From Dimorphilus gyrociliatus (taxonomy: Eukaryota; Animalia; Annelida), in NCBI GenBank assembly GCA_904063045.1, contig CAJFCJ010000007.1, forward strand, positions 2,611,404 to 2,675,403: a stretch of 64,000 nt of DNA, written 5' to 3'. The notes beneath the pieces are model-generated. The model was not told the DNA's origin. It saw only the letters and a program-made list of their open reading frames with translations, and ran no database searches. Of this stretch, positions 37,198-39,177 are shown piece by piece (positions within the stretch are counted from its first letter, which is position 1; every line of letters starts with the position of its first letter). Position numbers and translations under genes: made by a program.

Positions 37198-39177
37198 TTA
37201 TTTGAAAAGAATCATTCTCTTGGCACATTTCTTTCCAACGTGACGGGCGTATTCCTTTATATCATCTGTATTATTGCTTTGTCTATAGGTTTCGAATGCG
37301 ATAAGTCTTTTCGATCGATATATTAATATTTCGCTGAAATCGGTTGTAGCATCTTCATCTCGATCTGTAAAAAAAATTTTTTACTTGTTTGTTCATTAAG
37401 CTTAAGATAAATTAATAGATTAAATATATGAACATACCTTCTTTATTTGAGAATCTGCTATACTTTGACTGATCTAGTTTACGTTTGCATTCTTCAATTG
37501 GATGCCAGCTATAAGATTCTGGACAGAGTAAGTATGATGGATGGTATTGGCCTTTGTATCTCATTTTTGGACAGGAGTGAATATAGAATCCCATATAATA
37601 GAATTCAATGTTGCTAGCTTTCGCATGTAGTTCTCTGACGAATGATATTTCTCTAAAATAACGACATAATTACGAATGTGTGAGACTTTAATGGAGTTAG
37701 TTAGTAATCACCTTAACGCTGAATAAGTACCAAGCGTTAAAAAGTTAAACTCTGGATCATAAAATAAGTACACAGATGAAACGCATTTAGGTAAAATATC
37801 AATTACGCCAACTGCAATTAATCTATCATCTAGCCAATATTGTTGATGGAAAGAACCATAAGTTACTTCTCCGCTTACTTCTGGCTGTTTGAAGGAGAGC
37901 GTCAATAAAATTTCTTTTATAAGTTGTTCTAGAAAAGTGATTATTTTCATTATTTAGACATTATATACATATATAATGCATTATTTTGGGCCTAATCCGT
38001 CAGTTTAATATCTTACTAGTAAAGGACTCTCCACCAAAAAACCTTCAAATGCGTCTCTGTCACATTCACTAGGAGTATCTTTGTGAATTGTCATTTGATA
38101 TTTTTCAAAGAGAGAATGACTTAATTCCAAATCGTTTTCAGAGAGATCAGGGCAACTTATCAACTTAATCTGAATAAATAAGACAAAGATTACTGACCTT
38201 CAGCGGAGAATTTATTAGAAATCTTGTGAATTGACTTCTAGAAGGCTTGCTAGGCGGATCATTGTGTATCGTGGTTTGATATTTAAAATAAATTTCATAG
38301 CTTTTTTCAAATGTTCGCTTAAATTCTTCACTTCCCATGTTCGATTGAACAAGAACAATCTAGATTTATCAGATCAGCCCAACAGCTCATATAGAAAGCG
38401 ATATATATTAAAAATCTTACTTTAAGATTATGCTTTGGATTTGGTGAGATATCATTTAACAACTCTTCTAAACTTTTGGCTTGATTCTTTTTTGCTTTTT
38501 CGAATTTAGTGCTTGCTGCAGACTGATATAGAAAATAATTACATTAGTTATATCCTTAAGTCCAAAAAATATGAAATATTAACAGCTTTCTTAGCTAATT
38601 TCTCTTCTTTTCTTCTTTCTTTTGCTTTCCTACAAGGGGGTTTCGATGGATCAGGTCCCGCACCTGGTTTAGGGGTAGATTTGAAGCGCTTTGCTTCATC
38701 CTGCTTCTGGCCATTCGATGCTTTTACACCTGAATTTTCTTCGAATGATTTTCCAATTTCTCCAGTATTCAGAAATTTATTGAATGATTTGATCGTTTTT
38801 CGTTGGCCTTTGCTAATTGAAAAATCCAAAGACTGTTGTTTTATAGTATAGCTTGGACAGCATTGCTTGTCAAGAATTGGTTTGTAACAATAAGTTCCAC
38901 TTCTGAAAGATGAAAGAAACATAAAATCCTTGACTTTTGTAAGAAAAATAATATAATCAAACCTTCTCCATCCTCTATCAATCAGATCCTGATAATCCTG
39001 AACAGACATATCATAAGCAGACATGCCTATAAATTTTTTTTTTTACAATTAATATGTTTTACTTTGAAGTAAACAGCTAATATTCTTACCATAGGAACTA
39101 TTAGAAGCTCCTTTACAATAACCACAACTATAATCTGCGTGTGATGAATGATATTGAACTACTGTTCTGTTGTTCAT
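37198..39177 (-). CDS. ATE1: Arginyl-tRNA--protein transferase 1, containing a duplicated internal exon pair
   Basis: Seen: [23 protein letters not shown]...CCPSYTI, KYQxTIHx[57 protein letters not shown]. Confidence 0.97.
38017..38169 (-). other. ATE1: ATE1 alternative exon B (153 nt, phase 0-0)
   Basis: Seen: ttattcag|ATT...CTA|gtaaga, encoding [51 protein letters not shown]. Confidence 0.85.
38198..38359 (-). other. ATE1: ATE1 alternative exon A (162 nt, phase 0-0)
   Basis: Seen: ctag|ATT...AAG|gtcagt, encoding [54 protein letters not shown]. Confidence 0.88.

Follow-up and report, generated by a model that had tools for sequence, protein, structure and literature searches.

In this study, we analysed 64,000 nucleotides of Dimorphilus gyrociliatus DNA (contig CAJFCJ010000007.1, positions 2,611,404 to 2,675,403; this whole stretch is called the window), in which the minus strand carries the gene of ATE1, the arginyl-tRNA-protein transferase, with two adjacent homologous exons, A and B, between the constitutive exons 4 and 6. 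As far as RNA-derived contigs can show, exons A and B are used mutually exclusively. From the sequences compared here, we tentatively propose that the 28-nt spacer between the two exons may make them exclusive by steric hindrance, and that the choice between them may be tuned locally by a stem between U, a conserved element just upstream of exon A, and EA, a segment inside exon A. The first-pass annotation of this DNA had proposed another arrangement, in which U pairs with element D in the intron after exon B (intron 5) as an RNA-duplex splicing switch. In this genome, the compact complementarity of U and D exceeds what chance would give. It is probably a coincidence or a species-specific second partner of U, and the conserved core of the mechanism probably does not lie in the U:D duplex. 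The features are listed in Table 1.

The exon pair and its exclusive use

Exon 3 matches Pfam ATE_N, and ATE_C positions 2-122 are covered in turn by exon A or B, exon 6 and exon 7; the order of the domains, ATE_N followed by ATE_C, assigns the gene to ATE1, and PF04377 is present in all exon 6 homologues. Exons A and B both fall on ATE_C positions 2-35, that is, on the same protein segment, and their translations can be aligned from the I.L start through the SPL end. The RNA evidence consisted of Logan contigs, placed on the window, from two public runs, namely a coral metatranscriptome and a second run whose contigs are spliced. The contigs carry the joints 4-A, A-6, 4-B and B-6, and the A-B and 4-6 joints are absent from the contigs of both runs, which can miss rare forms.

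Exons 2 and 3 of alpha-tropomyosin are the classic sterically exclusive pair. The worm exons resemble such pairs in being adjacent and homologous, in being separated by an intron of 28 nt where the others of the gene have at least 59 nt, and in appearing one or the other per transcript. The spacer contains a donor, a pyrimidine tract, an acceptor and nothing else; the remaining coding-region introns of ATE1 are 59-73 nt, apart from intron 5, and the published median intron of Dimorphilus gyrociliatus is 66 nt. We believe that 28 nt would be too short for splicing, with U1 on the exon A donor and U2 on the exon B branch site unable to coexist, and whichever exon is defined first would exclude the other. 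Because such exclusivity would be steric, no RNA duplex would be needed for it. Steric hindrance of splice sites is listed among the mechanisms of exclusivity (Kalinina et al. 2020, PMC7797038).

The two ATE1 copies are separated by 33 nt in Haliotis, by 58 nt in Littorina and by roughly 500-1100 nt in three arthropods, namely an ant, a planthopper and a tick. With 28-58 nt between the exons in the annelid and the two gastropods, exclusivity in these animals would therefore be steric rather than structural. Compared with the classic steric pairs, the spacer of the worm is extreme and has the same 28 nt in the relative L007 described below, with 33 and 58 nt in the gastropods, and the steric block is here a deduction from that length. 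Database proteins in which both gastropod copies are joined, including one with the flag 'LOW QUALITY', probably arose by misannotation of a steric exclusive pair. The spacers of Littorina saxatilis (L004, 5348-5405, 58 nt) and Haliotis rubra (L006, about 8277-8309, 33 nt) are pyrimidine-rich and without a clear branch site.

A proposed local stem between U and exon A

The gene was compared with that of a relative, L007, a 28.8-kb Logan contig of run SRR23372228 that was reached via the neighbouring helicase open reading frame, whose protein is more than 90% identical. Positions 1-23498 of L007 are syntenic with window positions 15261-38387 in at least eight blocks with 66-82% DNA identity, and this level of identity over 23 kb indicates that L007 comes from a different but related species. 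The ATE1 gene of L007 has the same architecture (intron 4, 65 nt; exon A, 162 nt; spacer, 28 nt; exon B, 153 nt), the same exon A donor GUCAGU and again a long intron 5 of 175 nt. L007 is also a ready comparison partner for other findings in the 15-38 kb part of the window.

All 17 nucleotides of the U block, AGCUGUUGGGCUGAUCU, are identical in L007, compared with 28/44 in the rest of intron 4. None of the other introns compared between the window and L007 has an exact run as long, and the estimated chance of a 17-nt exact run at 50-64% background identity is about 3e-4 to 0.02. In conservation, U is thus the kind of intronic element that a docking site would be. The block includes the upstream arm of the first-pass annotation (38382-38370) together with CUGAUC, the only conserved branch-site motif, whose A lies 15 nt before exon A.

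When the pre-mRNA was scanned for partners of U, two equal optima were found, D at -17.9 kcal/mol and EA at -17.8 kcal/mol. In L007, the energy of U:EA is -20.1 kcal/mol: all 12 pairs of the stem are identical in both species, and L007 has two more A-U pairs, which come from one intron change and one exon change. Against intron shuffles, the z values of U:EA were -3.4 in the window and -4.1 in L007, and with U fixed about 0.017-0.02 partners as strong as EA are expected in 162 nt. Both the minimum-energy and the centroid structure contain the stem, in the window species and in L007 alike, and the conserved block and the stem share their edges. In folds of 596-951 nt, U:EA takes 0.88-0.95 of the ensemble and U:D at most 0.05; only contexts of 536-571 nt favour U:D (about 0.8 of the ensemble). 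The energies of the two forced states were -157.5 and -161.2 kcal/mol, a difference of 3.7 kcal/mol, with U:EA outcompeting U:D in contexts of at least 596 nt.

The codons of the pair are also conserved. Among identical residues, codon identity between the window and L007 is 0.77 in exon A, 0.70 in exon B and 0.57 in exon 6, on a background of 0.48 over 1030 codons of the neighbouring helicase gene. Raised synonymous conservation is usual for regulated alternative exons. At the protein level, exon B (about 65% identity) is evolving faster than exon A (87%); the pair as a whole spans window 38017-38359 and L007 23016-23358.

In this study, we speculate that exon A is where the choice is tuned; this exon comes first in transcription yet has weak splice signals: the pyrimidine fraction of its acceptor is 0.47, with a purine-rich tract, vs 0.82 for exon B, and its donor is GUCAGU vs GUAAGA. 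U would pair with the interior of exon A about 110 nt downstream, over 12 bp in the window species and 14 bp in the relative, and this stem could form as soon as exon A is transcribed. By hiding the branch site of exon A, it would delay commitment to A, and the stronger exon B could then compete. Where D is present, it would act as a second partner that keeps U masked and so also favours B. In Dscam1, 'balancer' RNA pairings are described as counteracting first-come-first-served splicing (Sci Adv 2022, PMC8791459). The role proposed for U:EA, holding back the first-transcribed exon, would be analogous, and the worm system possibly works like a steric exclusive pair with a balancer-type stem. 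Unlike Dscam1, the worm has a cluster of two exons and a local intron-exon stem with no docking/selector array, and the role of this stem is proposed from sequence.

In Littorina, a perfect 14-bp stem (-26.5 kcal/mol, reached by 0/190 shuffles) joins positions -24 to -10 before the first-copy exon with the interior of that exon at the codons V-H-A-H-K. Its sequence is GU/CA-rich and unrelated to that of the worm, and its placement matches U:EA.

Several results weigh against the proposed role of U:EA. The model depends on a single relative, L007, whose exon use is read from DNA, and between the window and L007 both arms are invariant, so the stem has no covariation. EA is coding and U contains the branch site; it is possible that separate constraints on the two, with chance complementarity at roughly the 2% level, account for the stem. 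Folds of the whole region are no more stable than shuffles in either species (z -0.2 and -0.8). An intron-exon stem is absent in Haliotis, Lycorma and Ixodes, and that of the ant is marginal (p 0.05). Lastly, U:D is statistically unusual and intron 5 of L007 keeps a 6-nt complement to the GC core of U, so that U may yet have a long-range partner.

The U:D duplex and other readings

The first-pass annotation placed the two arms of its duplex correctly. The upstream arm, UUGGGCUGAUCUG, lies at 38382-38370, 11-23 nt before exon A (start 38359), and spans two CUGAU motifs with the A at 15 and 10 nt before the exon; the downstream arm, CGGAUUAGGCCCAA, lies at 37999-37986, which is intron positions 18-31 after the exon B donor. 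The pairing described is genuine, with 13 bp, one bulged G and two G-U pairs. Its energy is -16.1 kcal/mol for the bare arms and -17.9 kcal/mol in 15-nt windows, whereas dinucleotide shuffles of both introns gave -10.0 +/- 1.65 with a minimum of -16.1. None of 150 shuffles, and none of 40 in a second run, reached the observed energy, and the compact helix thus stands above the shuffled background (0/190). The same geometry placed at 266 other sites of the window reached it once. With U fixed, the background frequency of equally strong partners is about 1e-4 per nt, which gives an expectation of about 0.013-0.017 in 132 nt. The downstream intron is, as had been said, about twice the normal length (132 nt vs 59-73 nt).

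Other expectations of the first-pass annotation were borne out in part. The fold of 536 nt that it suggested does contain the helix in its minimum-energy structure, but the energy of the fold (-100.3) is no better than that of shuffles (-101.8 +/- 5.7, z +0.26). The duplex of the whole introns is not outstanding either (-26.0 vs -19.2 +/- 3.6 for shuffles; z -1.9, with 4.4% of shuffles reaching it), and the wider AT-rich pairing around the U:D core is low-complexity TATATA. ACUGAC (38004-37999) is indeed the exact complement of the exon A donor GUCAGU (38197-38192), but the probability of this helix is 0.00 in all folds. The proposed masking of the branch point agrees with the overlap of U and the only good branch-site motifs of exon A, but the competing U:EA is favoured over U:D in contexts of at least 596 nt.

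The comparison with L007 bears most directly on the conservation of the downstream arm, for which the annotation had called for covariation in related species. Beyond the splice sites, only the 3' end of intron 5 (UUGA..CAAACAG) is kept between the window and L007. At the aligned site, the GGCCC core reads AAUUG and ACUGAC is deleted; U pairs with the aligned D at only -3.9 kcal/mol, with the best partner anywhere in intron 5 of L007 at -9.9 kcal/mol, and the best helix between introns 4 and 5 has -10.4 kcal/mol (z -0.39). For U:D as it was described, there is thus essentially no conservation or covariation, the outcome that the annotation itself had named as speaking against its switch. A pairing that is both conserved and covarying was found in neither case, since U:D falls to -3.9 and U:EA is invariant. 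Elsewhere in intron 5 of L007 there is a CCCAAC, the complement of the GUUGGG of U (about 0.045 expected on the background of the contig; noticed post hoc). In Littorina, Haliotis and the ant, no flanking-intron duplex with the geometry of the worm exceeds shuffles (z -0.27, +0.47 and +1.39, respectively).

The idea of a selected long-range switch, in which U:D, with or without the pairing of ACUGAC to the donor, masks the branch site of exon A and favours B, therefore meets mixed evidence, and we consider it unlikely. The rarity of the compact helix in shuffles, in real placements and by expected partner number speaks for it, as do its formation in contexts of 536-571 nt (minimum-energy structure, about 0.8 of the ensemble), the unusual length of intron 5 in both species and the recurrence of CCCAAC in L007. 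Set against these are the loss of D in L007 despite an identical U and an identical architecture, the advantage of U:EA in all longer contexts, the deletion of ACUGAC, and the missing flanking duplexes of Littorina, Haliotis and the ant. The duplex would, moreover, loop out both exons, yet the 4-6 joint was not seen.

RNA structure may also have no role at all. U would then be kept as a branch site and a protein-binding motif (a G-run and UGUU-type elements by CUGAUC) and EA as coding sequence; U:EA and U:D would be accidents of a GC-rich, partly palindromic (GAUC) element, and splice-site strength, transcription order and trans-acting factors would decide. The lack of covariation in both helices and of any excess stability in the overall folds fits this account, a GC-rich arm meets strong partners throughout the window (about 1e-4 per nt), of the six independent lineages three are without an intron-exon stem while a fourth, the ant, is marginal, and the asymmetry of the splice-site strengths could alone balance A and B. 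We regard it as somewhat doubtful in view of the two partners that U has within 400 nt at -17.8 or lower (about 0.05 expected), of a conserved block that reaches 10 nt upstream of the branch motif and stops where the stem stops, of changes on both sides that lengthen the stem in L007, and of the independent strong stem at the same place in Littorina.

U might instead dock either to EA or to a partner near exon B, with the two conformations setting the A:B ratio; D would be the B-side partner in the window species, and in L007 it would be CCCAAC or, at -14.8 kcal/mol, the beginning of exon B. U surpasses all other intronic elements in conservation, as is usual for docking sites, the two states are near-equal in energy in the window species with an ensemble that flips with context, L007 offers a second partner of U at the start of exon B, and EB, a segment of exon B, resembles U. 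We nevertheless consider such a docking-and-selector arrangement highly unlikely: EA is strong in both species and D in the window species only, the B-side partners are not homologous and those of L007 do not rise above background (for an exon as long as this one, about 0.12 partners would be expected at -14 or lower), and EB has not been kept in L007. In addition, U and hence the branch site of exon A would be masked in both states, which makes the route to favouring A unclear. Similarly, it seems to us quite improbable that U is central to a small bistable RNA switch atop the steric lock, setting the A:B ratio by pairing either with the interior of exon A or with a partner close to exon B. 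If this bistable reading were true, a stem masking the branch site of the first exon would recur in lophotrochozoans, given the unrelated 14-bp stem of Littorina, and an orthologous bilaterian exon pair would be under different RNA-structure solutions in worms, snails and mammals.

A few further candidates were considered for these elements. U or D as ends of a repeat or transposon was rejected (U has one exact copy in the window), and the small RNA gene looked for in intron 5 gave no Rfam family match. U and EB as remnants of exon duplication were also rejected, since the two sit at offsets from the exon cores that disagree by about 45 nt, and since L007 has not kept EB. The resemblance of EB to U is probably chance because it is not conserved in L007, where 5/8 pairs are left.

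Age of the exon types and comparison with mammalian ATE1

Both exon copies occur in tandem in many predicted ATE1 proteins, about 555-570 aa long, of arthropods, molluscs and vertebrates. In a tree of 71 exon-sized segments, first copies and second copies form separate clades across phyla (support 88/95); exon A of the window is placed in the first-copy clade and exon B in the second-copy clade, with the same order kept. The two clades across phyla and the shared order suggest one old duplication. From these sequences it is likely, although not proven, that the ATE1 exon pair goes back to a single old duplication and that the two types are common to bilaterians; a worm-specific duplication was not rejected by the approximately unbiased test (p 0.105, log-likelihood difference 13.9). 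Tandem-copy predicted isoforms were seen in crustaceans, ticks, a centipede, insects and gastropods (P0221, P0223-P0225, P0232, P0240, P0244, P0264, P0278).

A homolog of exon 7b has been said to be absent in invertebrates (PMC7797038), while alternative homologous ATE1 exons have been described in fly and nematode, with shared events read as convergent (Martinez-Gomez et al. 2022, PMC9741552). The exon types of the worm, molluscs and arthropods appear to conflict with the former statement and to qualify the latter reading: unlike what convergence would suggest, the two types form two clades across phyla with their order kept.

In mammals, the alternative exons of ATE1 give arginyltransferase isoforms with different biology, and competing intronic RNA structures choose between them. 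The choice between exons 7a and 7b is controlled by the competing structures R1-R5; the 7a-7b intron contains R2 and R3, and R5 is found 30 kb downstream (Kalinina et al. 2020, PMC7797038). The worm is similar in that the same gene and the same protein segment are concerned, exons A and B group with the vertebrate first and second copies, an element just upstream of the first exon base-pairs, and the downstream intron holds a further complementary element. The differences are that the 28-nt intron between the worm exons has no room for R2/R3, that exclusivity would be steric, that the partner of the upstream element (EA) is exonic and that the downstream arm is not conserved. By the layout of its elements, the worm pair is therefore not a member of the mammalian R1-R5 system. 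The first-pass annotation had raised deep conservation or convergence of the mammalian mechanism; as for deep conservation, a comparison of the layouts does not support homology of the elements, R2/R3 sitting where the worm has 28 nt. ATE1 would then be one old exon pair that may have changed its control mechanism during evolution, and the worm locus, which spans about 540 nt and includes the conserved element of 17 nt, would be a compact setting for the control of exon choice by an RNA stem.

Table 1. Features around the ATE1 exon pair (positions in the window unless a contig is named)
Feature	Positions	Strand	Evidence or remark
Exon 4, constitutive, upstream of the pair	38421..38522	-	RNA contig piece; joints 38421 to 38359 and to 38169
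Intron 4, 61 nt, GT..AG; ends in the weak acceptor of exon A	38360..38420	-	RNA contig joint skips 61 nt
Element U, 17-nt block AGCUGUUGGGCUGAUCU	38371..38387	-	17/17 identical in L007
Exon A, 162 nt, 54 aa, first-in-tandem type (vertebrate first-copy-like); donor GUCAGU	38198..38359	-	RNA contigs, Pfam, tree
EA, GAUCCGCCUAGCA, inside exon A, codons D-P-P-S-K; local partner of U	38248..38260	-	Duplex energy, conservation
Spacer between exons A and B, 28 nt, GT..AG	38170..38197	-	Sequence; no 28-nt joint in RNA contigs
Exon B, 153 nt, 51 aa, second-in-tandem type; strong polypyrimidine tract (0.82 pyrimidine); donor GUAAGA	38017..38169	-	RNA contigs, Pfam, tree
EB, GUUGCCCUGAUCU, in exon B; 11/13 identical to U	38144..38156	-	Weak alternative partner of D, -11.9 kcal/mol
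Intron 5, 132 nt	37885..38016	-	Twice the usual length; 175 nt in L007
Element D, downstream arm (37999-37986) with adjoining ACUGAC (38004-37999)	37986..38004	-	Pairs with U
Exon 6, constitutive, downstream of the pair	37712..37884	-	Joints 37884 to 38017 and 38198; ATE_C positions 34-83
Littorina stem arms	L004 about 5162-5176 with 5236-5250		Placement matches U:EA of the worm

Several searches for further relatives were made. The word search with exon 6 returned distant ATE1 fragments only (L001 and L002 with a single exon copy, L003 starting at exon 6), and the word search with the exon A open reading frame gave no match. Metagenome scans with the exon A peptide and with the conserved DNA pattern of U plus exon A gave no match. 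No close relative came from an exhaustive search of representatives with exon 7, in which the top match was 72% identical, and a word search with the ATE1 of a scorpion returned animal proteins with no annelids among them.

At the 5' side of the gene, the ATE1 transcript contig runs beyond 39203 into a match at 39926-39955 on the minus strand (window 39204-39960). This places an exon of the 5' untranslated region of ATE1 about 720 nt upstream, behind an intron (GTAAGA..TAG) that is unusually long for this genome.

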